64,000 nt of DNA, from positions 173,538,001-173,602,000 of the forward strand of contig JBITNC010000001.1 of NCBI GenBank assembly GCA_050084985.1, written 5' to 3'. The notes beneath the pieces are model-generated. The model had not been told where the DNA came from and did not search any database. It saw only the letters and a program-made list of their open reading frames with translations. The DNA is from Nageia nagi. Lineage: Eukaryota; Plantae; Pinophyta. Positions 1-46,400 of the stretch are shown here, piece by piece (the first letter of the stretch is position 1; every line of letters starts with the position of its first letter). The position numbers were made by a program, and so were the translations under genes.

Positions 1-3000
1 CATTAATCAAAAAATAGTTTCTTTGTACAAGAGTAGTCATTTAACATGATATGATGAGCTTCCATGAGTTTGCATATCCGAAGTAACTTACAATCTCAAG
101 AAGAACTTGCAAGCTACAAGCAACTCATAAATAAGATCAATTAGATACATCGTATACACTCATATATGATAAATGTTATCCATAAATTGATAAAAAATAA
201 CAAATCATCACATATGCACAACATCAAAGATGACATACATCAATTATATATCACATGTGCATACTAAACAAAATGTATCAACTACAATATGATATCAACA
301 ATAACATATGTGCACAACACTATTAGATACACAATCAACCAAGTAATATAAATACACTCTCAACCAAGGATATATAAAATATCAATTTTCATAAAAAAAT
401 AATTTGTGTTTGTTTATTTTAGATCATTATTTTGTATTTGTTGAGGGTATATGAAGATGTCATCACATCATAATATTTCATAATTTAGTTCTCTTGATGA
501 TAACTTCACTAAACAAATACTTATGTAACCATGTTATCTTAACTATTGCATAAATGACTAAATGCTATCTTGACTAAACCACTAAGTCAAGATTTTTAAA
601 GATATAACCATTTGAATAAATCAAGATTTATAAGCTACAAATGCCACGTTGATTAAATACAAAATCAAAATTTACAAAACAAAGCATAAGCCATATACAT
701 AAGTTCTTATCTATTGACAAACATGTTGATTTTGAACTTTAAGTTCTCATTCAACAATATTGTAGCATTGATAAAGAACAAACCACAAAATACCATCTTG
801 ATTACCACGTCAAAATACATAAGTCACAAAATGTCAACTTGATTATGCTATTAGTTAAGATTTATATAATGAAATTTGGTAGTATTAATCCATCAATATG
901 AATTCAAATTTCATCAAACAATTGCAATTTTAGAGAAGTGCAAACTTTTTTAACCACTTTAACAATGTGCCATCATGAAGAAGGTCGAACCTTTTTAACC
1001 ACTCCAACAATGTAGTCATAGAGAAAGATGAACCTTTTTAACTACTCTATCTACTACAAATTGCTAACAAATAACAATATGGCAATCAATCCATTGTCAT
1101 AGATAACATTTTCAAACAAAGAAGTATAGTGACATTAATCCATAAACATGGATAAATTTTTCAACTATGGAAGTATAATGGTATCAATTCATAAACATAG
1201 ATATTCTTCCAAAACATGAAAGTATAGAGGTTTTAATTTGTGAATATTCCCGAACATGGAAGTATTCTTGGATTTTATATTCCTCTTTAAGAGTAATTTT
1301 TATTAAAAAATGTTGCAATTACTAATATCTACAAACGTAGAAAGAAATGTACACTTTCCAAAGGTATTTGTACACTTTCGTTTTAAAGCAAAGATTTTTC
1401 TTATGCAAAAGCAATTAATAGTGAATTATCTTCAATAAATCTTGTGAAGAAAGTTTTAAAACTTTGCACTCCAAGTATATTATCCAATGTGCACAAATTT
1501 TTTGAAGATTAATGCACAACAATTCCAATGTTGAGAAAGTTTACAAACTTTATTCCAATAAGAATTTGTATTCAATCAAAATTTTTTCCATACAACGTAG
1601 GATCAATGTGCACAAATAAGAATGTGCATAACAAAAAAATTTTCATCCAATATAAGATTAAAAAATTAAGGATAGTTTAAAGAAAAGTTGCATAAATTTT
1701 TACTTCAAACAATATGCATACAAGAAATGTCCATATTAACCATTAATTTTATAATCCAATGCACATTAAGCATATTAAAACTTTTGCAATATAAATTAAT
1801 GCAACCAATAAGGATTATGCATTTCAAAGAAATATTTACTTAAATTTTCATTTTATGGATATTTAAGTACTATACTTTTTTTATTTAACTAAGGAGATTA
1901 TGTGCATAAATTAACCATCCAAGCACAATAGCAACATAATGTGCATAACCAAGTATAACAAACACAATAGCATAAATTTTTATAACATAATTAAAATGGT
2001 TTGCAAGGTATTGGACATAAAAAATATTGCTTTAAAAAGAAGTGTGCAATAAAAATAGTTTAAAAAGTATTAGATATAAAAAATATTGCTTTTACAAATT
2101 TATCTTACTTGATAAATTAGTTTAATTTTGCTTTGAAAGTTTTTTATATTTGCAATAATTATGCATTTAAATAAATAAATTTTGCACTAAAATGAAAATT
2201 TAGCAAATAAAAAAATTTTTGTACATAAAAAAAGCATATAAGTTACAATTTAGTCAATGTTTAAAAGTAGATAATTATCAATAATTTAAGTTTTTATTTA
2301 AAAATTGCATTAAAAGAATTGCATAATACTTTAAAAGATTTTAAGATTTAAATTTAACTCAATAAAAATTAGAAAGCCTTTCTTTTTTTAACTCAATAAA
2401 GATTTTTTTTTTTGTTTTTAAAAAAAAAAGATAAAAAAAGCTCATATTAAAGATGTTAAAATTTAAAAAACAACTTAAAAAAAATTTGCTTTGCCTTTCT
2501 AAAAAAGAAAAGATAGAATTTCTAATTTTTTAATGAGTTGCTTTCTTATTTTTAATATCTTTAATATGAGCACATTTTATTATTTAAAAAAAAAATCTTT
2601 AATGAGTTAAAAAAAGAAAGGTGGATTTTTTAATTTTTGAACGAGTTAAATTTAAATCCTAAAGTTTTTTAAAGTATGGTGTAATTTTTTAATGCAATTT
2701 TTAAGTAAAGATTTAAATTATTGATAATTATCTATTTTTAAGCATGGATTAAGTTGTAATTTATATATATTTTTTAATATATGAAATTTTTTTTATTTGT
2801 TAAATTCTTATTTTAGTGCAAATTTTATTTACTTAAATGCATAATTATTGCAAGTATAACAAATTTTTAAGGCAATTGTATTAATTTATGAAGTGATAAA
2901 TTTTTGAAGACTAATTATTTTTTAATGTCCAATATCTTGCAAACCATTTTAATTGCACACTTCTTTTAATGCATTTTTTTTTCTTATATTAATTTATGAC

Positions 3001-5158
3001 GTTTTGTTGTTATAATAACAAAGAAAAATGGAAGTTGCATTATGTTATACCAATTTGTGTTTGTTCAATTTGGTTATGTATATTATATTTCTATTATGTT
3101 TGGATGGTTAATTTATGCACATAATTAATCTCCTCGATTGGATGAAAACATATAATATTTAGATGTGCATAATATCAAAATTTAGGTGAATTTTTTTCTT
3201 CAAATTTTGATATGCATTATCTTTATTGGTTGCATTAATTTATATTGCAAAAATTTTATTATATTTAATGTGCATTGGATTATAAAATTGATGGTTAATA
3301 TGGACATTTCTTGTATGCATTTTATTTGAAGTAAAAATTTGTGTAATTTTTTTTCAAATTATTTTTAGTATTATTTTTTAATTCTATATTGGATGAAAAG
3401 TTTTTGGTTATGCACATATTCTTGTTTGTGTACATTGATCTTACGTTATATGACATTTTTTGCTGAACACAAATTTTTGTTGGAGTAAAGTTTGTAAATT
3501 TTCTTAACATTGAAATTGTTATGTATTAATGTTCAAAATTTTTGTGCATATTGAATAATATACTTGTTGGAGTTCAAAGTTTTAAATTTTTTTTCATAAA
3601 ATTTATTGAAGATAATTTACTATTGATTGGTTTTGTATAAGAAAAATCTTTGCTTTAAAACGAAAGTGTACAAGTACTTTTAGGAAATGTACATTCCTTT
3701 TTACATTTGTACAGATTAATAATTGCAACATATTTTTTTAATGCAAGTTACTCTTAAGAGGGAGTATAAAATTCAAACATACTTCTATGTTTGAGAATGT
3801 TCATAAATTAATGCTTTTATATTTTCATGTTTTGAAAGAATATCCATGTTTATGGATTGATGCCATTATACTTCCATGGTTGAAAAGTTTATCTATGTTT
3901 ATGGATTAATGCCATTATATTTTCTTATTTAAAAATTTTATCCGTGATGATGGATTGATTGCCATTTTGTTATTTGTTAGCAAGTTGTAGTAGATGGAAT
4001 AGTTAAAAAGGTTCGTCTTTTTATATGATTATATTGTTGGAGTGGTTAAAAAAGTTCAACCTTCTCTATGATTGCATATTATTGGAGTGGTTAAAAATGT
4101 TTGCATTTTTGCAAAATTGCAATTATTTGATGAAAGTTGAATTCATATTGATGGATTAATGCTATCAAATTTCATTATATGCATTTTGACTAGTAGCATA
4201 GTCAAGTTGATATTTTGTGGTTTGTGCATGTTGACGTGGTAGTCAAGATGATATTTTGTAGTTTGTTTTTTATCTATGCTACAGTATTGTTGAAGGAGAA
4301 CTTAAACCTCAAAATCAATGTTTGTAAATAGATAAGAATTTATGTATGTGGCTTATGCTTTATTTTGTAAATCTTGGCTTTGTGTTTGGTTAACTTGGTA
4401 TTTGTGATTTATGTTTTGTTTTATAAATCTTGACTTTGTGTTTGATCAACTTGGCATTTGTGGTTTATGTTTTGTTTTGTAGATCTTGGTCTTGTTTTTG
4501 GTCAAGTTGGGATTTGTGGCTTATAAATATTGATTTAGTCAAGTGGTTATGCCTTTGAAAATTTTGACTTAGTGGTTTAGTCAAGATGGCATTTGATCAT
4601 TTGTGACATGGTTAAGATAACATGGTCACATAAGTATTTGTTTGGTGAAATCATCAAAGAGAAGAATTAAATTATGAAACATTATGATGTGATGACACTT
4701 TCATATACCTTCAACAAATACAAAATAATGATCTAAAACAAACACAAAAATAAAAAATCAATTTTTTTTATAAAGATTGATGATATTTTTTATATCCTTG
4801 GTTGAGAATACATTTATATCACTTGGTTGATTGTGCATCTGATAGTATTGTGCACATATGATATTGTTGATAACATGTTATGGTTGATATATTTTGTTTA
4901 GTATGCATATGTGATATATAGTTGATGATGTATGTCATTTTTGATGTGCATATGTGATGACTTGACATTTTTGATCAGTTTATGGATGACATCTATCTTA
5001 TATGAGTATATGATGTATCTAATTGATTTTGTTTATGAGTTGCTTGTAGCTTGCAGGTTCTTGAGATTGTAGGTTATTTCGGGTATGTAGACTCATGGAG
5101 GCTCATTATATCAACATGAATGATTACTCTTGTATAAAGAAATTATTTTTTGGTTATG
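1..5158. repeat. Giant imperfect inverted repeat (arms ~1-2487 and ~2523-5158, ~35-bp spacer); left arm probably continues outside the window
   Basis: The reverse complement of 1-300 aligns to ~4865-5158, 541-600 to ~4554-4613, 1141-1200 to ~3843-3903 and 2221-2340 to ~2661-2782. Confidence 0.97.
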
Positions 5159-5329
5159 ATTGTATTATAAAATCATTTGTTAAAATGCGTAAGTAGTTGA
5201 GCCATTGTAGAACCATCTATATTCTATTAGTTTCTCAAAGATGCAAAAAGTTCTCAACTCCATTTGTATCTTTATGGAGCAGAATTCTCTTTTTTTTTCT
5301 ATCTTTTCGACTCTGCCCACTATTGCATT

Positions 5330-5338
5330 AAGGGAAAG
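5330..5338 (+). promoter_or_regulatory. Polypurine tract preceding LTR
   Basis: gcattAAGGGAAAG immediately followed by TGTTGG, the usual copia-like PPT/3'LTR junction. Confidence 0.65.
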
Positions 5339-5945
5339 TGTTGGAAATTGTAATGTAATATTGTGTAATATTTCTCTTTAATGTAGATTCACATAATGTT
5401 TTAAGTATTTTTTAGATATCTTAAAACATTAAGAGAATAAATATAGAAACACCTTTAACTTTACTCGGGTAAAAAGAAGGTTAAAGGGTGATTTTTTTTT
5501 ATAAATAAAGAGGTACCCCTCTCATTATGTAACTTGATGAAGCATGGTAATGCTTGTCTTGTAGAGATGCTCTTGTAGGAGCTTTGTAGAAGAATTTTTT
5601 GTAAAAGAATTCTTGAAAATTTGAAAAAGAGTTATCTTGTGAGAAGTAATAAAATGATGATTCAAAGTGGATGTACTCCCAATAGATGGAAAAATCACTA
5701 TACATGATGTGCTATTTTTTGTGTGATTGATTATTGTGTTGCTAGAAGGATGAATGCTTGATTTGTTGGAGAAGCTTGAAGGTGATCTTGGTTTATAGAA
5801 TCTTTCAATTCCATCAAGTGGTAAGGTTAAATATGTTTCTATATTTATTCCTTTAATGTTTTAAAGTATTTAAAGATACTTTAAGCATTAAGTGAATTTA
5901 CATTAAAAAGAAACATTACACAATATTACATTACAATTTCCAATA
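5339..5945 (+). mobile_element. 3' LTR (~607 bp) with ~125-bp terminal inverted repeats, belonging to the fold-back element
   Basis: TGTTGGAAATTGTAATGTAATATTGTGTAAT ... ATTACACAATATTACATTACAATTTCCAATA (CA->TA); TATAAATA at ~5500; preceded by a PPT; no flanking TSD as a MITE would have. Confidence 0.7.
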
Positions 5946-6089
5946 CATACATTGCAGAGGATTAAAGATGATTGTCCATAGGTGGACAATATTCGTCTAG
6001 AGGTGAGCGAGTGGTACCAAGAGGAAGCAGAAGATGGGGCTACATTGGATGAGGAAGGAGTTTGATAGAAGAAGAGGAGCATTGGGGAG

Positions 6090-6620
6090 CTCCCATACCT
6101 GACGTTGCATTCCAAAGAGCTTGGAGGGGCTATGTTGGGCTCATAATACCTTCTAGACTACATGTTGGGCCTTGGAGGAGTCAGGCACCCCACGTTGAGC
6201 CTTGAAGAGGCTAGACACCTCACGTTGGGTATTCGGAAGACTTGCCATTAGACATTGAGCCTTGGAGAGGCTAGACACCTCACGCTTGCCATCATACGTT
6301 GAGTTTGAAGGAGCTCCGGTTCCCCACCTCAGATTTAGGAGAGTTGCTATATCTCATGTGGGAGGATGAGGTATACTTGTGTGTGATGAGGAGCATGAAG
6401 GGGCTTGGGTATCCCACGTTCGGTTTGGAGGGGCATGAGCACCTGATGGTTGGGATAAGAAAATGTTGGCTCCCCAAGTTGGGCCTGGAAGGGTCTATGT
6501 ACTTGACATTGGACTAGATAGCAGTTTGACATCCCACATTGGTAGATGGAGGAGTCTTGGACCACATATGGAGTGATGGGAGAGCTTAGGACCCCATGTT
6601 GAGCTTGGGGGAGTTTCAGC
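6090..6620. repeat. Degenerate ~30-bp tandem repeat (CACGTTGGGCCTTGGAGGGG...), retroelement-derived
   Basis: Recurrent cacgttgag/catgttggg + cttggag motif at ~30-nt spacing. Confidence 0.7.
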
Positions 6621-6727
6621 CCTATCTATGGAGCAAGGGCTCCCCTTGTTTACACTCATCCATGATATTCCAAAGGTTTTTGTAGGTACAGCCCTACGTA
6701 GGTACACAAATCCTCAAGTGTATAAGG

Positions 6728-7204
6728 ATGACCATGGAGCAATTGATAAGGAGTGATAATTACATCAAATCAAAGTGTTTGCATGTTACATTGATGTATG
6801 GATATGAGGCTTTAGCAATATGCACCAAATTGCCATCCTGGATGAAGAGTATTGAAGTTGCATTCCACAATCATAAACCATTGCTACCAGGATTGAAGGA
6901 TTCTTGGAAGACAATATTACGTAGTTTTCCACCATTGCTTGAGGGCAAGCAATTCGAGAGTGGAAGCTTTGTGATGTCCCCCTTGCATGATCATAATTAA
7001 TTATAGAATCCAACAGATTCCTCTTGTAATATATTTTATTATTGTATTGTACTTTCATGTTGTAACTTGGGATAGAGGACTTAATGGGTCAATGGACCCC
7101 AACGTGAGCCCCAAGTGGGACATGTCCCTTCTATTGGAGGTTTTTTCTTTCCTACCCTCGAGTAGTGGGAAAAGTGCTAACATCTTAGGTGGAGGGACGT
7201 TACT
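6728..7204 (+). mobile_element. Gypsy pol tail, degenerate PPT and possible short LTR (6970-7204)
   Basis: cttgagggcaagcaattcgagagtggaagctt-TGTGATGTCCCC mirrors element A's cttggggacaagcaattttggaggggtggact-TGTAATGTCCC; ends GGGACGTTACT. Confidence 0.45.
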
Positions 7205-8212
7205 CCCTCCCGCTATAGGGACTAGTTACTTCAAAGGTTCGGCTTCGTGGGTTATGCAAGAACAACCTAGGGGACGGTTGAGATGTTTAAAGCTGCCACC
7301 AACATGAATATCATGTGTGGATTCAAGGGACTCGGATTATTTTGTGTTTGAGCTTCATCAAGGCCGCTTCTTAAGTGCTGAAAGGGAAATTGGGATGCGA
7401 AAGCCGCGAAAAGAAAGTGAAAATAGAAGAAAATAAAGAAATATAAAATGATGGAAAGATTGTGGGAACGGGATGCAAGAGTAGACACGCTAATTCATGG
7501 GCTTGATAAAGACTCTTGGAAGTCGACTCACTTGGGTTCAATGCGGGTTCCAAGCACCCACTATCGAGTCCTCCAGCCAACAACATGAATAGCTGGGTGA
7601 ATGGAGCATGAAGCTAGGGCAGTGAGATAAGACGGGACCAAGGTGGGACTAAAGGGCTCGGGTGAAGTCCCTGCGGCGAATAACATCAATGAGATAGCCC
7701 AAGATCATTAAACCAATATTGCCAATAGTGAAATGCCATCTACGAGATATCAGTCAATTTCTTCTCATATGCAAGCAACTATGAAATGCACCAAGTAAAC
7801 TGAGCTAACATTAAGTAATGACAGAAGAAAAACAGATAACACTATCTAGCATTCATTCACATCCACTATTGCAACATGAATAAGTATATCATCACAATAA
7901 CATCCACATACACCACTTTCAACACTTAAGAGCAATTTGGCATAGCAAAGTTGTATTAAGATGTCGAAAAGTCAAATCCCCCACAAATGAGTTAGAATGG
8001 GGTATAAATAATGTTAGGAGCAACCATCAGTGTTGCCCTAACCCTAATTCACAAAATAACATGTGATCAAATGAAAAATTACCACATGGCATTACAAAAT
8101 CTCCTCCAAACTTGTGGGAGCAAATCCTCATCCTTCATGAGTTTGGGAATAAAATAATATTAGAATGTCTAGCTAAAAGATACAAAAATAAAACAACTAA
8201 AAATAAAAATGG

Positions 8213-11200
8213 CTAAGCTAATGGTGGGCCCAAGCTCGCAACTTGGTCCTCGAACCCAACTGCTAGGAACTCTATCATGTGCTCCACCCCGCTTAGCATC
8301 TCTAAGAACTTTGGTTTGCTGGTAATCATGCTCTCCTCGACTTCATTCACCATCCTTTGCATTTTGTCTTTCCATGTTTTGGCCTGTAGCATATGCCTCA
8401 AGTGACTCCTTGTTTGGTAGTTCACATCCTCGATCATCATTAGACTAAGGAGGTGTTTGACCTTGGCCACTACCTCATCTGCTTCCCAGATGGTGGTGTC
8501 TTCCTCCAAGAATTGTACCTGAAAATCCATCCGTTCCATACATGCATGGACCTTGTCATTAATTGCGGTCACCCCTTGTTTCGTCTCCTAGAAACAGGTA
8601 TGTACCTGGCTGTTTACACCCGAATAGAACCAGTAGTCCTCACAAAACTGTGTCCTCGGGTCTCTGAGTATGCATCGTCGTGTATCTTAGTATCATGGGT
8701 TTCTGGGAGTTTAAGATCCTGAGTAGCCTGGCCCTTTTGGTGACAATATACCTGAGTTGCTTCTCTGAGAACAAGATTTGGTGGAGGATATCGATGAATC
8801 GTCTCAACACTGCTAAGGCCTCTTCCATCACCTCTTGTTTCACAACAATCATTCCTTCTTTGAGAGGTCTTACCTTCTTGAGTTCATCTGTAGGTACTTT
8901 GGCAGACTCCAACTCGTGAGTCAATCTCCTCTGGGTTACCAACTCCTTCAAGCTTTTTATCTCTTTTTCCTTCAACAACCCATCCTTGGCTGTTGCCTCG
9001 GTATTTGAAATAATAACATGCTTTTTGCTAGTCACACCAATTGGGCCCGTGTTGATGATCTGATTTATTTGCCTCAAGTCTTCGGGACCTGGGGTTGTCC
9101 TTGTCTGCCACTATGGTGTTGATGCACACTGTGTTTTCTGTCATATGTACGCAGGTCTGACTCTTCCCCAAGCGAGTGGAACTATCTTCAACCTGATTTC
9201 CTGTCCCTCTGAGCCTGAATTCTTCTCCTACGTCCATGTTGAAGACATCGAGACACTCGTCTATGTCTACTCCCCACTCAGGATTGGGCAGAGGTTGATG
9301 GGTCTCAACAACTGCTTTTGAAACGACGATTGCTTTGTTTTGGATCTTCTTCAAAGGCCTCTCAACTTGCCTTGCATTTTCCCCTGGTGTTACCGACAAC
9401 CTGGACTGGGATCCTTTCTTCAATTGGGTTCTTCTCAGCATTGATTCCAGAGCGAGGTCTTTGTCCTTCCTCTGGGAGATTGATGGCTCTGAGCTGGCGT
9501 GATTATGGGTGTCGTTCAAGATCTCCACTGATGGTTCTTCCTCACCCTATGCGTCCTGTATATCTCTCTCTGGAATGGTACTAGCTTCATGTTCATCTCC
9601 CGACCCCTCCTTTGACTTGTCTTGCGGAATACTTTCATATTCCCCTTTCTCAAGCATGCTTTGTCAGTCACCATTTTCTTGTCTATCTGCTTGTTCTCCA
9701 TGAGGGGTGCCATGGTCTTCATATTGGGGTCCTGAGGACTCTGATCCTGATCGTGGAATGGTCGGGGATGGATGCGCCGCTGCTATCCTTGTTGGCTTTG
9801 GCCAGAGTCGGATCTGGTCTTTGGTTCCTCACACATCTCACCATCTTATCGGTGGCCACATGCTTCAACTCCCTCACGTCATGTTCATCAACCATCTCCC
9901 TAACTTGCTGTGCTACCTGCTCAACGGGGGCCCTCCCATGCATGGAGGCATACTATCCAACAAGCTCTCCAATCGTTGGTGGAAACTGAGTGACCTTGGA
10001 AGTAGACCTGTGTGGTTTCTTTCCCTGAGATTGAGACAACTTATGAATTGACGCCTCTACCTCCTGTTGTTGCCTCTGAGCCTCTTCCTACATCTTGGTG
10101 TAGATCTTCTTCACTTCCACTTCGGCATTGATGTTCCGGAATGGCTCCTCATCTCTGAGTGGTCTATGCTCGTAAGCTCTCTTCGTTTCCTTCATGTAAA
10201 ACTCGTGAATCCGATGTTCAAGGTTATAATGATTGGTGGTCGGCATCTTCGGGAAGTTGTACTTTGCCAACTCCTCCGTCATGGAAATCACATCCGCCCA
10301 AGCTCTACACTGATACTCCCCAATTGTAATTGGCAGATTGGAAGTGGCCAACTTCTTTTGCCAAATGTGTTCATGCAAGTAGACTAATTGCCTCATCATC
10401 TCCATCAGGAGCATCCGATTGCTTATGTACCGAGGCAATTGATAAGGTTCCACGATCGACCCATAGAGACGGATGTAAGAGTAGTGTTGGTGGTGGGTGA
10501 AGAAGTCTCTATGTCTCCTCAACGCATCTTGGGCTACGTTGGAGATCCTAGCAACAGTATTCTCTCCCTTAAGCTCCTTGTAAATTTCATACTCCCATTC
10601 ATCACTCCTCATCGTGAAGTCTTACCATCTCCTCTCGACCTTCCACTTAGGATAGCATTTCGACACTGCGTATGTTTCCTTTGTGATCAAGTCCGCCTCT
10701 CCTAAAGTTGTGGGCCTCGATTTGCCATGCAGCAATAGGTATATCAGGTAAGAGTTGAGGTAGAACTTGTGTGTGGTTCCTATTGATGACAATTGGTCCA
10801 TGATATTGTCGCTTAACACTTTGCTCCACTTGATCTTCTTTCTCGGGGCTATCTCCACAATGAAGCCGAAGAACTCCTTTCAGAACTTGGATGCATCCTT
10901 TTTCCCTAGAACTCTTGACAACATGAGGATCATTAATTGAACAAAGGGGTAGAAGTGGGAGCAAGGGGCATTGATAAGTGCATTACCCTTCAGGCCATGG
11001 TGCTCCTTGAGCATCTAACTTTTGATTGCTTCGGCTGCCCTGTTGGTGTCCTGATAGCATGTTAACGACTCCTCTTTTGTGTATTCAAAGTTGCCTTCCG
11101 CTGCCCATTGGAATGCCTTCGAGGCTGAAGTCCATGATGACGTTGCCTTTGATGTCTCGGAGCACTCTCACCCATCTTCCAATGTTGGCTAACTTCCAAG

Positions 11201-11496
11201 CACAACTCTAGGAATGGAGCCGTGAATGGGACGAATGTACAAGTCAAGAGCCTCGAGAAGAAGGCGATGTCATGTTTCAACTCGTTGATGGGTTTGTTCC
11301 TGATCTTCTCCCTTATCTGCATCGGATCCACCTTCTGCCAGTATGTGTCCCCGATAGTGGCCAACCCATTTTTGGAGAATTTAGCCCCTTGGGGCAAGGG
11401 GTCCTATTTCTCGCATATGGTGATGAGGCATTCTTGCTTGATGTATTGCAGATCTCATGCATAATCCTTGGCTGAATTGCTTTTGGAACTAGTCAT
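8213..11496 (-). pseudogene. Decayed ~1,000-aa retroelement accessory ORF, frameshifted and with stops
   Basis: Contiguous minus-strand ORF pieces 11062-11397, 10622-10858 (WSKVLSDNIMDQL...FYLNSYLIYLL), 10088-10612 (YSYIRLYGSIVEPYQLPRY...LLMEMMRQL), 9719-9943, 9028-9528, 8640-9077, 8213-8572 (coiled-coil-like); likely ATG at 11496. Confidence 0.7.
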
Positions 11497-11705
11497 GGTG
11501 CCTTGACGAATGACGAGTACCCTCCAAGGTGATGTGCTTTTTTGGCAAGCCTATGACCCCCACGGCTTCTTCCTAACCTCCTATATCTCTTGTGCAAGCC
11601 TCCCCAAGCAAATGGACGGATTTGAAATTCAAAAATATGCAATTTCAGCACAAGTGTAGAAGAGGAGTGCGATTTGAATTTGGGAAAATGAGGTCCCCAA
11701 GTTGA

Positions 11706-11713
11706 TATTTATA
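11706..11713 (-). promoter_or_regulatory. TATA box (TATAAATA) for the minus-strand accessory ORF
   Basis: tatttata on +, ~210 bp upstream of the ATG at 11496, followed by a pyrimidine-rich leader on the minus strand. Confidence 0.55.
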
Positions 11714-11870
11714 GCTAATGTGGGCATTTTGAAAACCCTAGTCGGCTAGGTTTTGGAGAAAAACACATCTCAACCATTGAAGTGGTTGACGTCGAGATGT
11801 GTGCCATCTTGAAACCCTATTCCTAGCCATCCGAGACCAATCGTTGGGATTTTGGAGGCTCTTTTGGCCT

Positions 11871-12833
11871 AGCACATGCTTCCAAAAGACAAGGTTTTGT
11901 CTTTTTGAGGCATGCGCCAGCCCCTGGGGTGGTTGCATTCCCAACATTGGCCCTCCTAGTGTTCCTGCTCGTCCAACTTGACCTTAGAGCGCCGTCCTGA
12001 GCTTGATTTTGCTTGGTGCTTAATTCTCTGGGGTTCAACTTGCTCATTTTCTCCTCCTAACTTGACCCAAGGTCCCTCCCAAACTAGGCGCATGGTTTTA
12101 AAAGAGAGGATCTTGTCTTTTTGAAACTCCCTCCAACTTCTTCAGCTTCCCCAGTCTAGGCGCTTGCTCCCAAAAGTCACAATCTTGTCTTCCTGTGGCA
12201 TGCGTTGGGTTGCAAATGGCCAGTTTTGCCTTGTTTTGGCCTCTTGATCCCTGGACTTAGTCATTTTCCCATACTTGCTTCACCTTGATGCTTTGCCAAG
12301 CTTGGCGCATGCTCCAAAAAGTCATGTTTTTGTCTTTTGGAGGCATGCACCAACCCCTCTGGTCATGCTGGAGTGTGCTCCAGGCTTGAAAACTCTGTGC
12401 TTTAGCCAAATTCTCCGTTTCATCATGTCTGGGGGCTTCCTGGGCTAGGCGTATGCTCCCAAAAGACAAGATTATGGCTTTTCGAGGCATGTGCCAGCCC
12501 CTTAGGTGAGTGTATTTCTTCTTTCTGGGCCCCAAGTCTTCCTGGGTAACCTTCGGGCTTGGGCGCATGCTCCCAAAAGACAAGATTTTGTCTTTTTGAG
12601 GCCTATGCCAGCCTTCTCATGCACTAACTTGTCATTTTCCAGGCTTGATTTCGTTTTGGGGTCCTTGACCTGGTGCATGTCCCAGAAAGACAAGATTTTG
12701 CCTTTTCATGGCATGCGTTTGGTCAAGGAGTGGCCCAATTTGCGTTTTGGGACTTAATTTCGAAGCCAAGCTTCCTTGTAGGCTAGGTGCATGTCCCAAA
12801 AAGACACAATCTTTCCTTCTTGGATTATGCACC
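11871..12833. repeat. Array of eight 48-bp palindromic repeats with variable spacers
   Basis: Units start at 11871, 12087, 12159, 12304, 12448, 12562, 12672 and 12786; consensus GGCGCATGCTCCCAAAAGACAAGATYTTGTCTTTTTGAGGCATGCGCC. Confidence 0.92.
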
Positions 12834-13797
12834 AGGCTTGGGAGGAGCTTGGGTCCGTCTGTTTCGGCTTGAACTTGACTTGGACTTCCCTATTTCATCT
12901 AGACTTGATCTTCACTTGGCCAGACTTAGGCGATTTTTGAGGGTTTTACTATATGGTTTGAGATGGCTAGGGCTGGATAGGCGATTGCACTTCAATGTCA
13001 GGGTCATGGGCTTAATTTCAGATTTACTGAAGATGAGGGGGAATGGTTTTGACTTGACATTTAGGGCTCCAGATTGTCGAGGGTCCTTGGAATTGCAAAA
13101 TTTAGGGGCGAGTTGTGTAAGGCACAACACCTCCCAATCTTAGATTAGGTGTTATTATTGTACGTAGAGATCTCGATTTTGATTGTGGGAATCGCAAGGT
13201 CTATTCTACACGTGGATGGATGAGCATTTATATACATGCGCCAGCCTTGGGGAGGCTCCTAGACCTCCATGTTGGCCCATCATGACACCTAGACTCCATG
13301 CATGACTTCTAGACCCACGTGGGCATGCGTGGCACTCCTAGACCTCCACGTTGGCACTTAGGGCACTCTAGGCCCCCATGTTGGCATGCCTAACCCCAAG
13401 GCACCCATGAGCATTTTGGACCCCCAGGAGGCTAACGTTGGGATTAAGGGGCCAGGTGATGACTCCTAGGTGAGATCTGGACAAAGTTGCATGTATAAAG
13501 AGACATTGGAGCCTCATTGTTGGATATACCTGATTATTATTATACTTCATATTGTCATGTGGACAACAAGACTTAGTGGTGCTAAGCAAACCCCTAGGTG
13601 CAACATCTAAGATGGCTATTAGGCGGAGGGATCCTGATCGTCTACGACATTGGTGCAAAACCCTTGCCTATCTGATGGTATTTTGAGGTTGATCTTCTGC
13701 GATTTAGTTGGCCGCCTGGGTTTGAGGAGGCCTTCTTCGGTGGAGAGGATTCAAATTCTGAGGAAGCAAGGTTGTCCCATGGTTCTACTTGATCATC

Positions 13798-14575
13798 AAG
13801 GATTGGGAGACTAGGGGGACAGGGAAACAAGGGGACGAGTCCATAGGGACGGCGACTCGATTTTAGGAAATGCGAGGGGGACGACAAGTATATATATATA
13901 CTAAAAAAATCCTCAAAATTTAAGAAAAGTAGATATTAGATATAGTTTCAATGTTTCATTCATCATTAGCATTCATGATTCATCCATGGACCAATTTACA
14001 TATGTAACACATTTTGAAAATGAAAATCTGTAACTATTAACATACTAACAATTAACATGTAGCATGATTATAAAATGAAAATCAGAAATCTGAATCATAA
14101 ATGATAAATCAGATTAAGCTATAAATATAGTCTAATAATCATAATGCCATTAAGTTTGAATATGTTAAGGCCCAAAAACATAGTCTTTAACATAAATTTG
14201 TCAAATAAGTCAAAAATGACAAATAAGTGTAAATGACAAAATGATTGCAATGTGAATATAAAGACATGTTTTTAGGGTTGGAGACCCTTGTGGGACCCAC
14301 CCCACTAAGATTTATGAAAAAAAATTTAAAAAAAGTTTAGATTTTTTTTTTTAGTGTGCAAGAGGGGGGATGGCTAGCCGTCCCCTAGCCATCCCCTTTT
14401 CAAAATTTCAAAAGGAAACGTCCCCAAGGCTTGAGAAATCGTCCCAAGGATGTCCCCTCCGTATGCCCAAAAAAGGGGATGGCTGGGAAACATCCCCTGA
14501 GGCATCCCCAAGTCTTGAGGATGTGGGGGACGGGAAACAGGAAAAAAAGAGGGGGATGCATCCCCTGATAATGTT
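13798..14575. mobile_element. Non-autonomous DNA transposon (hAT-like) with GGGGACG/CGTCCCC subterminal repeats and an AT-rich core
   Basis: Clusters of ggggac(g) at 13815-13885 and cgtcccc/catcccc at 14370-14566; TIR and TSD not resolved. Confidence 0.5.
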
Positions 14576-15481
14576 ACTAAAAATTGATAGTTTCTGGTAA
14601 CAGAATGAGACATTGACTTGATGCCAGATGAGGAGGTGCAGGTGGGTATTGGTTGAGTTCCCCACTACATGAGCCACGTGAGTCAGCAGTGGCAATAGTG
14701 ATGATTACTATGCCTTAGGGGTTCCTATGGTAGAGCAGTTTGAACATTGATATTCATATAATCATAATCATTGTAATCAATTTTGACAATGTGTTTGACA
14801 GTTAGAGTCTATTATTTCAATATGAAGGTTTAGACTTTAAATTATTAAACCTTGGCATATAGAATAGTCGTAAATTTCAAAGTACCATGAATTATTTTAT
14901 ACTTTGCTTCTTTAAAGGTGTTTCAGATTTTTGATTTTTTATTGATGAATAATCATGCTCAGAGAGTCTCTTTAGCTTTTTTATTTATTTTATAACATAT
15001 ATCTATATAACTAATTTTCAGTTTTTATCATGTCTATGAGACCTCTAGAATTCCAGCCATATCTGTGCCATTTCTGAAACAAGTTCTGCCCTAATCTTGT
15101 CCTTGTTGTGGAAATGCCATGTAACATATCTCTTGATGTTTTCACTGCAAGAAAGGAATGGCTTGGCCCCTTTTGTATTATAGATTTATGCCTCCTTTCT
15201 TAGTTGTTCAGGAGGGAAATTAAAATTTTGTAAACCCAGTTACTTCTAGTGTTATAATAAGTTATCTAAAATAAGTGGGAAGTCTTTCGCTGTCTAAAGA
15301 AGACAATATTATCTTATTGGAAACCTTTTTATTTTAGCAGTCTTCTGTTTCTTTGCAGACTTTTTTTCCTATTGGTCCTATTGCCTTGTACTTTCTGTAG
15401 GGTAATTTTAAAAATGTTTCTTTCCCATGCTTGAAATTTCTAGCATTATATGTTTAAATATTGATTTTTGACTTTGAACAG

Positions 15482-15588
15482 GAAAAAATACTGAACATTG
15501 AATATATACTAGCAGTTGCTCCTCCTAAGCAGGAAGAGCCATATCTACATAATGATTGGGTCAGTGCAGTTGATGGTTCTTATTCCAG
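15482..15588 (+). CDS. WDR12: WDR12 first visible exon (end of UBL/NLE domain, start of WD1)
   Basis: cag|GAAAAAATACTG...TATTCCAG|gt; [35 protein letters not shown], phase 2. Confidence 0.93.
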
Positions 15589-34400: not shown

Positions 34401-37400
34401 ATTCATTGCTAATACAAAACATAGTTAAATGCGATCCATTACCAACACCGGCTTTAAGTGTTTTGGTATATGATTTCATTGCAACAATAAAGGTTCTGTC
34501 GAACTCTTGCTCAATGGTTGACCCATTATTAGACTAAAGTCATATCTTCTTAGGCAGAGGTTTATAATCCAAACATAGATCTTAACAAAGGTAATATGGG
34601 AATGTTTTGGGAAACTATTGATATTGAGATGAGTTTACCCATTTCATTTCCAATAACTTGGAATAGTTTAACATCCTAAAGGTGGATTGGGAGATTGGAC
34701 ATCATTATCCAAATTGATGTGCTTTTTGGGTTCTCCACCTAATCAAAGGAATATATTTACGCCATAGCCGTCCTCTTTGAAGAGGGAGGAGCAAAACTTT
34801 CGATCAACGGTGGTTAATGGCTGTAAGAACATAGCAGACGATGAAATGAGGTTGGACCATTGATTCACTGTGCAAGAGCGAGGGTGGTATTGAGGACACG
34901 TGTAACTACGACGCTTTTTAGTTACAGGGAGTCGTAGGAATTAGTTACAGGGAGTGGCAAGCAGGAAAGTCGCTACAAGGTAGTTAGCATATCGATGCGT
35001 ACACAAGGGGCCAATCACGTCCGCATAACTTGGAGGACAAACAGATTGTCAGATGGTGCATGAACCTTATGTTGGGAAGAATACCTTGCTAGTCTTTTTA
35101 AGCTATGCAAGATCATTACTCACATTCAGTATTTCGATTTACGTCCTGGAGCTTGTGAATAGGAAGCTAGCAACTTCACAACTCTACAATTCCCTTCCTG
35201 CTGTCTGTCCTCCAAAATGAACTGTTCAAAGTCATCTTATCCTAAAATTTCACTTTTCTGCATTCCAAGTTTGTGGCAGCATGCATTGTATTTTGCATTC
35301 AATGCACCCAATGGCCTCTGCCATACACATTCTTCCTGGAAACCTTCGCTCATTCATTGTCTCACCGATGGAGGATGTTGTGGAGCTTCCTCTAGCGTCG
35401 AGGTCTATGGTGCAGCCAACAATTCATTTTTCTCACCACTTCATTGCTTCATATGTCAAACTTTGATCCTTAATATAGTTATATCACTATATGTCGGTAC
35501 AATTTTCTTTATGTGTTTGTTGTTCTTCAGGTCTTATTGGAAAAAGAAAAGCAAGGGTCTAAATGATTTCACCTTGAGATTTGGGCCTCCAAGAATTTCA
35601 TATGAAGAAATTGCTTCTTGAGGTTTCAATGAAACCAATATGATAGGAATCGCTAGTTTTGGATCTGTCTACAAAGGGACCTTGAATAATGGCATGGTTA
35701 TTGCAATTAGAGTTCTTAATTTATAGGATGAAGAAGCCCATCAGAGTTTCATAGAGAATGCAACGCATTTGGAAAAGCTCGGTATCGAAATGTGATTAAA
35801 GTCATGACCATCTGATCTAATATTGACTTCAAAGCTTTGGTTCTTCCTTTCATGTCAAATGGAAATTTGCAGAGCGCTTTTAAATTAAATTTAAGTGAAA
35901 TACGGAGAATAGCTATGGAAATAGTGCAAGGAATTGCTTATCTACACCACCATTCTTTTGTGCAGATAGTTCATTGTGATTTAAAACCCAGTAATGTGCT
36001 CTTGAGAGATGACATGACTGCCTACATATCAGACTTTGGAAATGCCAAGCTAATATTTGGAGATTCAGTAAAACTAACTGCCACAAATGCACTTATAGGA
36101 TCCATTGGATATGTGGCACCAGTTATTTATTGTGCATCGTTATAAATTCTATTATTTGCCTTTCTTTTAAATTTGGAATAAATACAAGGACCTGATAATA
36201 TTTACTTAATTTATTGTATCACAAAGTATGGACTAGGTGGAAATGTTTTCACAAAAGGAGATGTATACAATTAAAGCATTGTATTGTTGGAGTTGTTGAC
36301 AAGGAAGAAGCCTACGGATGACATGTTTGAGGGAGAAATGGACTAGCATGGACTTCCCAAAAAAAGTGAGAGAAGTGGTAGACAACTTCTTGCCTCAAGA
36401 TGTAAATGAATCAGATATGACCACTGTGTAGGCATGCATTTCTCATCTCATGCAAGTGGATTTGGATTGTGTGAATGAGACTCCACAGCAACGCCCAAAT
36501 ATGATGGAACTTGTGGACAGAATGGAAAAAATCAAAGGTGTGAGCTTTTGAATTGCCGATAGGTATATACAAGAAATGTTGTAACAATGGTAATAGAGGT
36601 AACAATGTAAGTTGAAGTTGGTCCACAAGCACATTTTAGTCTTGTAAAATCCGCTGCAAATACTTATTGTTGTTGGAGTTATGAATATTTGGAAATTTTA
36701 GAGCTAGAAAATACTTATATTTCTGACTTGGATTGCAAGCCTCTTTTCTTTTAGAAAAAAATACATTGCCTTTTTAGGAGAAGTGACTTTCTCAAGAATA
36801 TTTCTCTTCACACATTGTCCTCTCTTCCTAAGCTTAATTATCTTCATATTCAAGTTGCTGTTGTTACAAATCCAAGTCTCTTCTCATTTATATCACCTCC
36901 ATTGCTGCAAGTATCGGATCTGAGAGAGTGCTGGCTTTTAACCAAAGAGGAAAAATATCCTGAAATTGAATTAAGGGCCAAGGCACAAATGGGTTGCAAC
37001 TATCTCTAAGGAGCAATCTCATCATAGTTGCAGCAACTGGTTTTCAAGGGAGACTTTAGATGCAACAAGATGGAAGCAGGGAATAAAATCTACCAGTAAA
37101 AACTCCTTATCTAAAGAACATAAGAACTAAACACAAACAAGATTTGTAGTTTTGTCTATTTGTTCTTTTCATTGTATATTTCTTTCCAAGAAAGAGGCTA
37201 TATCTTTGCTGCTTTGGCAGCTTAATATTTTGGTCATCAAATATTTCATTTATCTTGCTGATGAACAAGTTAACTACAGCCCATCTGAGCTCTTGCAGTT
37301 TTGAGCATTTCAATAATTTGTTTGATCCTTGTCAGAAAACTGTAATTATCTACCTAACTCTCTAGGAAGAATTGATTAACTAATGACTTTTTCTAACTTC

Positions 37401-40400: not shown

Positions 40401-43400
40401 TCATTAAGGGTGAATCCAGCCATCTAGATCATACATCCAACATAAAGGAGGCTGATTTTGTTATTTGAATGAGTTTTCCAGTTCTTTCCAATGATTATTG
40501 CCTCTTTCTTTCCAATGATTATTGCTTTTTATGTTTTCCAATTTTGTGCTACTTGTTGATGGATCTCTTTATCTTTTAGGGTTCTCCCTATACACTTCGA
40601 GCTCAATGTGTGCATGGTTAGGTAGTTGACGATGGGTCAACCTTTGTTACAACATAATTGCATAATTAGACTTAATATTATTGCTAATTGGCTATAGGTC
40701 ATAGAGATTAGTACGATATTGATATTTACATATAAATAAGAGAATGGGTTGAATCCATTGTGTTCATTTAACCTAGAGATCCACTTGTTTAAATTCAGTT
40801 CCTACATAACATGAAATCCAAATATCTTCAATTCTAAAAAAATAAAGAGCATCACATAAATATAAATCATGCCTATTTCCAACTATTCAAAATATACATG
40901 CCACATCATCATAATTACTTAATAATTGAAAAGTATAAAAAGGTGCCTCAACGAGGGTCATCATAGAGTTTAATGTGCCATATTGGAGAGCCTCCAAGTG
41001 GGATAAAACATAAAAAACCCATAATTAATGCCAAAATTATCATAATATTTCCAAATTACCTTAAAACTACTAAAATAGTCCTAAAAAGCTGAAAGAGCAC
41101 AATGAGGATGAACGTCCAACTTTCTCCAATAATCATTTGATTGTTTTAAAATTTAAAATTCTCAAACTGTGACAAACTTGGAAATTATTTCGCAACAACT
41201 TAGTTTTTGAAATGGCATCAAGAAGTATAAAAGAATGACCTCTGCCAATTTTTCACATAGATTTTGAATATACAGTTGGAATCATAAAATTCCTTACAGA
41301 CCTCCCAAATATTGCAAATTTTCCCAACCCTAGCTACCTAGCCTACCACTATATGATGACAATATCTCCTTTCTTTTTTTTTTTTTTAATCAAAGAGCTG
41401 AATTTTGGACCGCACATCCAAAATATCCTCTTCTTGAATCCCACCGATTGAAATCTTTTATTGGTATTCCAAACTCAAGAAATTGCAAAAATATTTTAAG
41501 CATCTGTTGAGAACCCTAGTTATTCAATTCTTGCTTGATGGAATTGTCTAATGGCTTTGGTACCATGAGTTATGCTATAATTTCAAAGAATGAAACACCT
41601 TGACCATTCCACACAAAGTGAAAAAGAAGAGAATAATGTAACATAGGAAAATATCGTGCACAAAAATATGGAGGAAGTGGTTTAGCCAAAAATATCACCA
41701 TAATATGCTTCATTAGATGCTATGTTCAGAATGAGCCACCTATTGCTTACAATGTTGGCTAGGAGGGATCTATAAACAGGCTCAAAAACTCCTACCAATC
41801 CACTTGACTTAATTGATACATTGGATTACACAATGTGTTATGATCTCAATTGTCGATTGATCACCAACACAATGATCCTTGTTCATACACATATGTCCAA
41901 TAGGAGTTCAGCATGTTGCTTTAATATTAATAAATACGTAAGTGATAATAAACATAAGGCTGATGTTAAGTTTAGCTTAGCATCCAACAAACAAATGTGC
42001 ATTACCTGCTTTTATTATCTTTTATGGCATAATTGGCTTCAAATGGGAGAGTATCCCCCATGTGCAACCTCTTTGGATTAGTGAATTTGTCCACTTGTCC
42101 AAGTGAACTCTCTTATGGGTATTGCCATGCCTTGCATTTAGTCTTTTTAGGTGATTGATGATAATGTTTTTTTGTACTTCTTAATATTCTAACATGGCTT
42201 AGATCCACCTTTACCTTCATGTTACCTACTCAGGTGTTCTCCCGTGTTGCTCAAAAAATATTTTGAATCTGGTTCATCTAGCTATGTTTATCTTTGTGTT
42301 TAGCTTTATATCTCTTCTTGTTTTAGAGCCCTTTTTAGGCTTATAGAGTATTTTGTATGCCCACTTTATTATTTACTGTTGCATTCACCTACTTTGGTCA
42401 GCATTGCACATTATAAAATTTTCAACTTCCTTGTTATTTTTATCGGGCTGAGGATTTCCATGATTTCTTTTGCTGGCACTAAGCAAAGTGGGTATGGGGC
42501 ACTCTATGTTACTTGGTTATCACCCTCATTGACCTGCATTTCTGTGAAGGACTTGAGTGTGAAGTCATTCCACTGAAGGTCTGAAGTGTGAGTTTCAATT
42601 TCCATCAGATTTTAGTAGTTGATTTGCTCTCTTGGCAGTTGTGACTGATGCTTTTCCTTAGAGATTGTTGAGCCAATTTCTGTCTTGGTTGACTTCTGAG
42701 AACTGTGAATTGTAGCTATACTTTTAGTTCTATACAAATCAAACTAATTTTTAGCTTTCATCCATCGATTGGGTTGTTGGTACTAAAGCAATTTTCTTTC
42801 TGTTATAGATTTGCTACATTTCTATATAAAAACTGAAATTTTGAAGGAAATACAAAATCACTCGACTTATTTCAAATGTTTAAATTGGAGAGTTTGTTCT
42901 TGGAAAAAGATTCGTCAGTATTTTTGAAGTTTATAAGATAAGTTTGATTAAAATCAGACATAACAAGATTAAGAATTCTGAAATGTTTAAATTAGTTATC
43001 AGTTATTGTCTCTAATGTTATTGGAATTCAAGGTGTATGTCTGCATGGTCTTCTCCAGTGTTAGTGTATCTTCCATCTGCTTTGAACCTTCATTAACATG
43101 TCAAAACTTTTTCCTTTGAATTTCTAGAAGCGTTTTCCCAATAAATTTTTTATTTTCAATTGTCTAACGAGTTGTCGTTCAATGCAGCTTTCTATTTTCT
43201 GGATCATTTGACAGCATTGGAAGGTGATATTCACTACCATGGGGATTGCTATTTGATTTTTTAATGCTAATATAATTTCAGTTTGATGTCAAATAATGAC
43301 AATTTTTATTAAATGTCTATCTGGTAAGGCATAATATTTGGAGAACACTGTTTATTTCTATCTTTTTTAACACGTCATGGCAGGATATGGAAAGAAGGAT

Positions 43401-46400
43401 TGTGTACACATATTTTTGAGGGGCATGGGGATGCTATCACTTCTGCTGCTTTTGTGAAAAATTCAGGTTATACACTTTGGTTTGGATTTTCATACTTTTC
43501 TTCTTAGCTAATGATGTTTTGTCATGACACATTTTTTGTTTTTATGCATAGCATTTATTTTGCTACATTGCAATTATCAAAATAAGTAACAATTTGTCTC
43601 CAAGTGATATAAGTGATAGAATGTCCTCTTACTAGATTACAACTATGAAGACCTCGAATAATTTGCCCCTGAATGATAAATGGCATGAATGAGCTTATTC
43701 TGTTCTTAATAGTGTTGGTACAGCTGTTACCTGTATTAGATGATATCTAAAGGAAAACATCAAATTCCAGGTTTTTTGTAGTTTCAAGGTCAAAAGGTAG
43801 AAGTACTGACTATAATAGCGAGTCATTAGGCGCCTATGTTGGTTAAGAAAGGAGGATGGACAATCTGTAACTGCCATGTCATCCTTATTCCCATTGGAGA
43901 GTGATGATAATGGTGATTTTGATATTCATATAAAGTGTGGGAGTGTAGCAAGTATGTATCATAGGGATGTTTTTGAGGGGCAAATCATCTTTGTACCAAT
44001 ATACACACATAGAAACAAGATAATTTTAAACCATATTTTAAGCATGCGCAAAAGGATTACAAGATGATGGAGACTAGTTTTCCAAGTGAAACTTCAGGAC
44101 AAGGAAAATAAAATGTGCCTGATACCATCATGGACTATTCACGAATTATTTTACAATTTCTATGAGCATTTAATGTACGTGGCCTGCCTTAGGGTAAAAG
44201 TCATACCCTAAGCGGGACTTCAGTTTAGTTTCATAATGTTTGTGAGTATATAGTTCTTGGTATTACAAGAAGCAGTCCAAAATCATTTGATCATTCCCAA
44301 TTTAAATACTTTGTCTACTTTAGTGGCTAAGTTTTCCGTGTTTTTGTTTTGATACGGTAAATGAGGGGGACTCCTTATATAAGAACTTAAAACCTGTTTT
44401 TAGAGATTTACATCAGTCTCGGCAATATTTGCCCCCGTTTACTGTATAATACCTTTTGGTAGACCAAAAACTGGTTGCCAGTTACATATTTGATATTTCC
44501 TATGGTATAATACAAATTTCAGGTCTTTGGTAGCCCAACAATTGGCTACCAACGGCAAGTTTCCTTCAAGGGTTGGTTCTCAAGTCCAACTAGTTTGTAG
44601 CCTTAGTGTTCTTTGTCTTTGGAAAATTATTTTTTCGTTTTCTTTGGGCTTGCTAACCCAAAGTTTTCTAGAAGTCTCTGTTCACCATTGACAATATCTT
44701 TGTTCATATTTTTTCTGAGTGTTTTCTGATTTAGTTTGCCCTTTACTTTTTTTCTTTCTTTCCTCCATTTGGGTTTCTGAGTACGCTCTTTGTTAATCGG
44801 ATTGGTGTTGAGTTTAGGACTTAAAAGTAAGCTTCTTGATCAGTTTCAGAGGCTACCAAGTCTGATGCAATAGGATCTGCATCGTTTTCCTTTGTTTCTG
44901 ACGATTTAATCTTGATTGTAGTTGGATTTTTCTTCTTGATTATGATCCATTCGCCATCTCCTTGAGCATTTGTAGTATCTGTTTTCTTTTCTACCTCTGA
45001 AGTTTTTGGTGAATTATTCCATTGATCTGGACTTAGTTCTTTTGTAGTTGAGTTTGCTGCTGGGGTCCCTTGAACTTTGATGTTCGGTTTGGTAGCCTCT
45101 TGTTGGATTTTGCCTTCTTCCAAATTTTCTGCTTCAGTCTTCTGCGTTTTGTGGAGCAGGATTTTGGTCTTGCTTCGGTTGCCATGTTTGCTTTGAAATT
45201 TCCAAAATTTGGTTTGTTATTTCTTTTTGGGCAGTTTTGCGGAATATGTCCTGCATGAGCGCATACTGGCAAATCATAATGATGTTCTCATATTTGATTT
45301 GTTGATTCCAAACTCCTTTTTCATGAGAAGTTTGAAGTTTGATTTATTTCGGTACCATTTGGTCGAAGTTGACTTGCACACAAAAGTGAGCTTTCGATAA
45401 GCAAGGTTTAGCCTTGTTGGTGGCTATCGAACGTGCAATAGAGCGGATGATTCCTTTTATTACTTTCTGATGTCAAAGTTCAAAAGGGAGATTAGGTAAG
45501 CTTACCCAGAGTGGATTTCTTCAATGTCCACTGTGAACAGTTTCCTCCAAGGCTTAGAGCATGAAAGCATCCTGAGGGGTCGAGGCTACCAAGTTAGCAA
45601 GGACATTGCAGTGGTCGAAGGGAACAGGGAGAAGAGCTGGAAAGAAGCGAAAAAGGGCTACAGATGAATACACATTGCATTATTGTTTCTTTCCTCCCGT
45701 AGTTCTCTTTTGTTTTGATGTTCTTCGGGCTAAGTTTTCAGTTATTGATATCCTACATCTTCATTATTTGGAACTGAAGGTTCTTGTTCTCCCTATGCAT
45801 ATGTATGTACTGGTAATGTTATAATGTGATATGCTTTTATACAAAATTCTAGCTGTTTTAATTTTCTTTAATCTCCATATTTCATCTCAATCCCCAGATG
45901 CAGCACTACGGAAAGAACTTGCACCATTTTCAGCATGGAAGTGTTTTTGTCACTTGATGAACCTCCGTGTCCTAATTTCTGATTTGGTTCCTACTTTGAT
46001 TTAAGTTTATATAGAATTTGAAATTCTTATCCATCCAACAGAGTTTCATGTGAGGGTGACTGGAATTTGAAAGAAATATCAATGAATTGTACTTGGCTCT
46101 GGTGGAAGATTTTAATGAATCTGTATGGCTGATGTTTCTGGAACCAGATTTTCAATTTTGCTTATTGATTGTGCTTGTGGCTTAGTTTTTCTTGGCTTGA
46201 TATTGCAGTGGAAGCTCAAAGATCAGTATTAAAGATGTTCAAATAACCAATTAATCTATTGTATATCATACATCATGTCTGGTGCATCCTTGGGCAATTG
46301 TTCAAACAAGTTTGATTCGTGGTTGTGCAATCTGATTTATTTGCTTGAGTTTTGACATTGACAAATCTTGTGAACATGAAGCTTGATCATTTTATGAACA

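Follow-up and report, generated by a model that had tools for sequence, protein, structure and literature searches.

Excess of G.T over A.C mismatches in a fold-back retrotransposon copy of Nageia nagi, with a similar strand skew in neighbouring repeats

We analysed 64,000 nucleotides of the genome of the conifer Nageia nagi (GenBank assembly GCA_050084985.1, contig JBITNC010000001.1, positions 173,538,001 to 173,602,000 of the forward strand; the whole stretch is called the window below). Positions 1-5945 hold the 3' part of an old, non-coding copy derived from a long terminal repeat (LTR) retrotransposon, of which only the 3' half is in view and whose interior folds back on itself as a hairpin with kilobase-long arms. 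Where the arms disagree, mismatches that would give G.U pairs in plus-strand RNA outnumber those that would give A.C. We put at about 50% the reading that this is an old fold-back retrotransposon copy from an abundant family, in which strand-asymmetric mutation or repair produced the G.T excess. The initial annotation had instead proposed that the RNA is selected to fold into a multi-kb double-stranded RNA (dsRNA) rod. Such selection is unsupported: the bias is not specific to the paired region. Nor is it needed, because ordinary repeats nearby carry an equal one-strand skew, although it is possible for mismatches at the level of the family.

The hairpin itself is as first described, with two arms of about 2.5 kb roughly 35 bp apart. 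A repeat search of the window places the inverted arms at 4-2487 and 2524-5156, with 36 nt in between, and base pairing reaches base 1, so the left arm is cut by the window edge. Neither the arms nor the LTR have a second copy elsewhere in the 64-kb window. We aligned the left half with the reverse complement of the right half by a full local alignment. The 2449 paired columns comprise 2093 Watson-Crick pairs (85.5%), 178 G.T, 83 A.C and 95 mismatches of other kinds. The alignment has 34 gap events, which leave 34 nt of the left arm and 184 nt of the right arm unaligned. An assembly fold-back artefact is ruled out because the arms have diverged by 14.5% (Kimura two-parameter distance 0.165, roughly 6-12 million years if neutral). 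Folded in silico, both strands form a rod, at -2765 kcal/mol with 2215 arm-to-arm pairs for the plus strand and at -2384 kcal/mol with 2111 for the minus strand. Relatives of the element come from one scan of metagenome contigs, which returned four plant-like loci, 67-77% identical; one of them is called L004 here. The hairpin has the following parts.

1-2487, plus strand: left arm, which repeats the internal region in inverted orientation; its plus strand is rich in A+C (keto skew -0.11), and it is cut at the window start.
2488-2523, plus strand: apex or loop, 36 nt, A/T-rich.
2524-5159, plus strand: right arm, G+T-rich and probably still in the original orientation, sense; it runs colinear with L004, a relative with one arm.
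923-1055, plus strand: 45-nt tandem sub-repeats of the left arm, with a right-arm counterpart at about 3995-4103; the unit is also carried by L004, at 2150-2511.
3783-4514, plus strand: tandem sub-repeats of the right arm, with units of 49 nt (3783-3977) and 56 nt (4347-4514).

Over the full alignment the ratio of G.T to A.C is 2.1:1 (178 against 83; 95% confidence interval 1.6-2.8; binomial p=4e-9 against 1:1), and BLAST-based alignments of the arms give about 2.2:1. The bias reported in the initial annotation is therefore real, but not at the size claimed; the earlier figure of 45-50 against fewer than 10, that is 5:1 or more, came from nine blocks only. The excess is even along the stem, being present in 9 of 10 bins (heterogeneity p=0.47). 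About 620 stem columns could be polarised with the relatives L001, L003 and L004 as outgroups. On the plus strand they record 29 C>T and 9 G>A changes (p=0.0017 for this pair of classes), along with 11 A>G and 4 T>C, with both arms affected.

The thymines of the G.T pairs lie in a would-be CHH context in 90% of cases and are seldom followed by G. CG and CHG sites were nearly gone already before the arms diverged, and CpG decay is ruled out as the source of the bias, with only 10 G.T against 3 A.C mismatches in CG context. Damage to dipyrimidines by ultraviolet (UV) light was considered too, and the typical pattern of 5' neighbours shows no enrichment. Strand-biased methylation guided by small interfering RNAs (siRNAs) from the hairpin was set aside: either arm could be targeted on either strand, and LTR pairs that form no hairpin are equally skewed.

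Those LTR pairs are the local controls. The two LTRs of an element start out identical and then accumulate differences where they stand, which makes them a record of the local mutation regime free of RNA-level selection. Three direct repeat pairs in the window could be used: the LTR pairs 17610-18190/31462-32056 and 18710-19479/25644-26425 and a tandem pair at 49.7 kb. Pooled and read on the plus strand, they hold 72 C/T and 46 A/G differences, where strand symmetry, corrected for composition, expects 57-60 (p 0.004-0.02). Each LTR pair was also polarised by the other pair, which is related but inverted. This gave 23 C>T, 12 G>A, 8 A>G and 6 T>C changes. Changes towards G or T thus number 31 and changes away from them 18, which does not differ from the 178:83 of the hairpin (Fisher p=0.51). 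The premise that neutral change should give about 1:1, from which selection had been argued, fails in this window: LTR pairs diverging in place show an equal plus-strand transition skew.

The pair 18710-19479/25644-26425 belongs to an element whose open reading frames (ORFs) lie on the minus strand. The skew therefore tracks the plus strand of the window and not the sense strand of an element. It is also regional. Of the 32 2-kb bins, 26 have more G+T than A+C on the plus strand, and this excess dies away from about 54 kb on, past the last exon recognised of a WDR12/Ytm1-like gene that lies on the same strand. Over the whole window the plus strand has more T than A (22038 against 19600) and more G than C (11475 against 10887).

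Short contigs from public sequencing data show how the window copy compares with its family. Between 4,864 and 10,043 short Logan contigs per run could be placed on 1-5945 in four public runs, which are labelled as different organisms. Contig depth peaks over the LTR and declines towards the apex. The hairpin element is a member of a very abundant dispersed repeat family. Nearly all contigs of all runs differ from the window at 38 arm positions, 34 of them paired. At 26 of these 34 sites the majority base of the family restores a Watson-Crick pair, so that the mismatch is private to the window copy; these private mismatches are 9 G.U, 4 A.C and 13 transversions. At the remaining 8 the family base fails to complement the unchanged partner (3 G.U, 3 A.C and 2 other). 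Positions with T or G in the window and C or A in the contigs outnumber the opposite case by 119, 88, 106 and 99, run by run, which is close to the total G.U excess of 95. The excess is largely attributable to changes private to the window copy.

We propose the following history for the element. The internal region would have been duplicated in inverted orientation by a fold-back event, its breakpoint symmetric and its loop 36 nt long, and this may have happened during reverse transcription. The arms would then have diverged by 14.5% in place, while plus-strand cytosines, and to a lesser extent adenines, mutated more often than their complements throughout the region. The plus strand is the sense (non-transcribed) strand of WDR12, whose giant introns probably contain the element, and transcription-coupled repair could be the cause of the asymmetry. 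In Arabidopsis genes, C>T changes are 1.9-fold commoner on the non-transcribed strand, which the authors credit to transcription-coupled nucleotide excision repair (TC-NER) (preprint, bioRxiv 10.64898/2026.08.04.742834). This roughly two-fold asymmetry matches both the 2.1:1 of the hairpin and the 23:12 of the LTR controls, and the hairpin count does not differ from the published 1.9:1 (p=0.40). Unlike that study, which concerns somatic changes in annotated Arabidopsis genes, the divergence seen here is fixed, lies in transposons within a presumed giant intron and belongs to another plant.

Several observations weigh against strand-asymmetric mutation as we have set it out. Taken alone, the polarised LTR test, with outgroups that are 67-75% identical, gives p=0.085, and the control samples are small. 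An array of 48-bp palindromes at 11.9-12.8 kb lacks the skew (18:16), although we consider it uninformative as a control. If only C>T were asymmetric, at 1.9-fold, a G.U share of about 0.61 would be expected, against 0.68 observed (p=0.02); A>G leans the same way too (11:4). The 5' neighbours expected of UV damage are missing, as noted. Contigs that map across both arms could inflate the keto-gaining excess of 88-119. Family-shared mismatches, where selection would show, are visible at 8 sites only. Finally, the hairpin is only presumed to lie in the transcription unit, since no 5' exon of WDR12 was seen.

Selection on the sense RNA of a mobile hairpin retroelement, with G.U tolerated and A.C purged to keep a multi-kb dsRNA rod, would explain why the 178:83 excess is uniform along the stem and why both classes of change that create G.U are raised (C>T 29:9, A>G 11:4). 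It would also fit a plus-strand fold that is about 380 kcal/mol more stable than that of the minus strand, and in so abundant a family master copies could have been selected. A precedent exists in G:U hairpin transgenes, which evade self-silencing (PMC9263138). Yet LTR pairs incapable of forming a rod carry the same skew. The mismatches private to the window copy already stand at 9:4, while the visible family-shared ones are balanced at 3 G.U to 3 A.C. The 95 transversion mismatches, the 34 gap events and the 184 extra nucleotides in one arm argue against tight constraint, and the distant relative L004 (67-72% identical) has no second arm in its visible part. We consider selection for a rod quite unlikely. 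A fuller version is less probable still: that a high-copy non-coding LTR family replicates with a hairpin interior of at least 5 kb, its rod extended by the 127-nt ends of the LTR and kept folded by G.U-tolerant selection because it aids packaging, acts as a decoy for silencing or provides a mobile source of siRNAs.

The bias could also have been gained in cycles of retrotransposition, through G.T mispairs made by reverse transcriptase during plus-strand synthesis or through damage to the RNA genome, either of which would load C>T and A>G onto the sense strand of a master lineage. C>T and A>G are indeed both raised about three-fold, and the sense strand is G+T-rich in the right arm, the LTR and the relatives. 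This origin is unlikely, however, given that the element with minus-strand ORFs is skewed on the window plus strand in changes made after its insertion, and that differences between the window copy and its family show an excess close in size to the entire G.U excess. A third alternative concerns the fold-back more than the bias. The fold-back may be a one-off rearrangement of a single copy, through a reverse-transcription accident or DNA fold-back repair, perhaps continuing upstream through an inverted tail and LTR, and not a mobile hairpin element at all. The hairpin does run off the window start. Of about 3.9 kb in L004, most is G+T-rich and no inverted arm appears. The identity of long contigs on the arms to the window, about 81-91%, does not exceed that between the two arms. 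On the other side, the 8 of 34 sites at which the family base mismatches its partner suggest that contigs separate the left arm from the right, and depth in the bin that contains the apex shows no dip in three of the four runs. A one-off origin of the fold-back is credible, and we hold this account to have a substantial chance of being correct, though one short of even. There are weak hints that other family copies may carry the fold-back, but none of the contigs shown bridges the apex.

An inverted repeat is a built-in detector of strand-asymmetric mutation, since counts of G.T against A.C need no outgroup, and a G.U excess in a transcribed region is unreadable as RNA-level selection when local controls are lacking. 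A sense-oriented dsRNA rod of 2.5 kb in the intron of a housekeeping gene could affect small-RNA production and gene regulation. If the fold-back is carried by the whole abundant family, the architecture would be unusual for a retroelement and worth describing.

The relatives bear on the ancestral layout of the element. L004 is one-armed in its visible part and colinear with the right arm and what follows it, at 3995-4346, 5026-5368 and 5637-5740. The ancestral layout was therefore probably a single arm, whose orientation the right arm has kept. A TATA motif lies about 200 nt into the LTR of L004 as well. Tandem repeats of 45-46 nt occur in the retrotransposon relatives, in L001 at 8272-8471 and 9600-9843 and in L004 over the interval given above. 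The contigs with plant retrotransposon relatives are Ga0115851_100421, Ga0068628_1001525 (identical over the part compared), Ga0068628_1021916 and Ga0068623_1000397, and plant DNA is hence present in the metagenomes behind these four. Scans of viral-contig and genome-contig collections returned no copies of the family, and a search for protein homologues with a 62-aa ORF of the arm and a 68-aa ORF of the LTR returned no match.

Downstream of the stem, the initial annotation had recognised a polypurine tract followed by an LTR, and this is borne out. The purine tract, together with a run of pyrimidines and the TGTT with which the LTR begins, forms one block that is strongly conserved in relatives 67-77% identical. 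We take the boundary between polypurine tract and LTR to be real because this block is conserved in L001 and L004. The features are as follows.

5160-5329, plus strand: tail of 170 nt, from the visible end of the stem to the purine tract; any partner would lie upstream of the window.
5330-5338, plus strand: polypurine tract AAGGGAAAG, within the block conserved in relatives.
5339-5945, plus strand: putative 3' LTR of 607 bp, with TGTTGG at its start and CCAATA at its end; a TATA-like motif occupies 5500-5509, and contig depth over 1-5945 is greatest here.
5338-5464, plus strand: left terminal inverted repeat inside the LTR, which pairs with 5821-5946 (87-89% complementary; G.T 8 against A.C 5).
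5821-5946, plus strand: right terminal inverted repeat inside the LTR, the partner of 5338-5464.
5946-5950, plus strand: CATAC, immediately downstream of the LTR; it may be one half of a target-site duplication, whose other half would lie outside the window.

The LTR terminus is TA instead of CA, one transition off. The LTR is itself bounded by 127-nt terminal inverted repeats, an unusual feature that neither L001 nor L004 shares. Pairing of the U5 end with the start of U3 through these repeats could lengthen the rod in a genomic RNA. As claimed earlier, there is no coding capacity: the longest ORF in 1-5945 is 70 aa, and a Pfam search of this segment gave no match. No Rfam family was detected at gathering thresholds anywhere in the window. 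These results support the assignment of 1-5945 to a non-coding sequence derived from an LTR retrotransposon, with the plus strand as its sense strand.

Several known systems resemble the element in part. Large retrotransposon derivatives (LARDs) are non-autonomous LTR retrotransposons, and the element is like them in its non-coding interior of at least 5.3 kb, its polypurine tract beside an LTR that starts with TG, its TATA motif and its high copy number. Unlike in LARDs, the interior is an inverted duplication, the LTR has 127-nt terminal inverted repeats, and one LTR is in view; a 5' LTR, its primer-binding site and the outer half of the target-site duplication would all lie upstream of the window. 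Foldback transposons (FB-like elements) offer another comparison, having very long A/T-rich inverted arms, partly made of tandem sub-repeats, a tiny middle and no genes. In contrast to a Foldback element, the right arm does not end in a terminus; what follows it is the conserved polypurine tract and then an LTR-like end with a TATA motif. Natural long inverted-repeat (hairpin RNA) loci of plants, among them the PAI1-PAI4 inverted repeat (cited in PMC9263138), share kilobase arms, a short loop and dsRNA if transcribed; methylation is drawn to such loci. The window arms differ in being derived from a transposon and not from a gene, and they are known here from sequence alone.

The engineered G:U hairpin transgenes are the closest parallel to the mismatch bias, and the initial annotation reported their avoidance of self-silencing correctly (PMC9263138). 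In these constructs C-to-T changes leave G.U pairs in the RNA and break the inverted repeat in the DNA; every cytosine of the sense arm was changed, giving about 18-22% G.U (PMC9263138). The window hairpin has 7% G.U, so that the density in the transgenes is about three times higher, and it has 3.4% A.C as well. Both of its arms are hit, unlike in the transgenes, and its non-hairpin neighbours are skewed too.

The gene context rests on exons of WDR12 that were matched singly and not as a joined model.

15458-15570, plus strand: WDR12 exon, matching residues 75-119 of human WDR12.
About 43400-43470 and 47560-48200, plus strand: WDR12 exons, searched one by one.
51604-52518, plus strand: WDR12 exon or exons, matching residues 252-303.

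These positions (15.46, 43.4, 47.6-48.2 and 51.6-52.5 kb) confirm that the plus strand, the sense strand defined by the polypurine tract, is also the WDR12 strand, as proposed at the outset. If WDR12 is intact, its first exon or exons lie upstream of the window and the hairpin is intronic. A position within a WDR12 intron is thus plausible for an intact gene. The exon or exons for residues 1-74 were not found in the window, and a search of the open segments on the plus strand from 5946 to 15460, 123 in number and each at least 24 aa long, recovered no NLE-domain exon. A candidate upstream exon at 14891-14992 was rejected, having no PDB or Pfam match. A query of protein representatives with one WDR12 exon returned no WDR12 orthologue, the matches being swamped by multi-repeat WD40 proteins.

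The WDR12/Ytm1-like gene spans at least 37 kb, and one intron of about 28 kb (15.6-43.3 kb) is packed with nested LTR elements. The LTR families of 17610-18190/31462-32056 and 18710-19479/25644-26425 are related and lie in opposite orientation. The LTRs of the nested inner element are 81% identical, against 86% in the surrounding outer element, the reverse of the expected age order. Directly after the hairpin element, 6072-6508 is G+C-rich, with units of about 30 nt at multiples of 30 nt. The stretch is probably part of an adjoining Ogre-like element, and the hairpin element would have inserted in it or next to it. A plus-strand fragment of a protein-kinase domain (Pkinase, E=1e-17), at 35816-36548 in what is presumed to be the giant intron of WDR12, may be a captured fragment or a separate gene.

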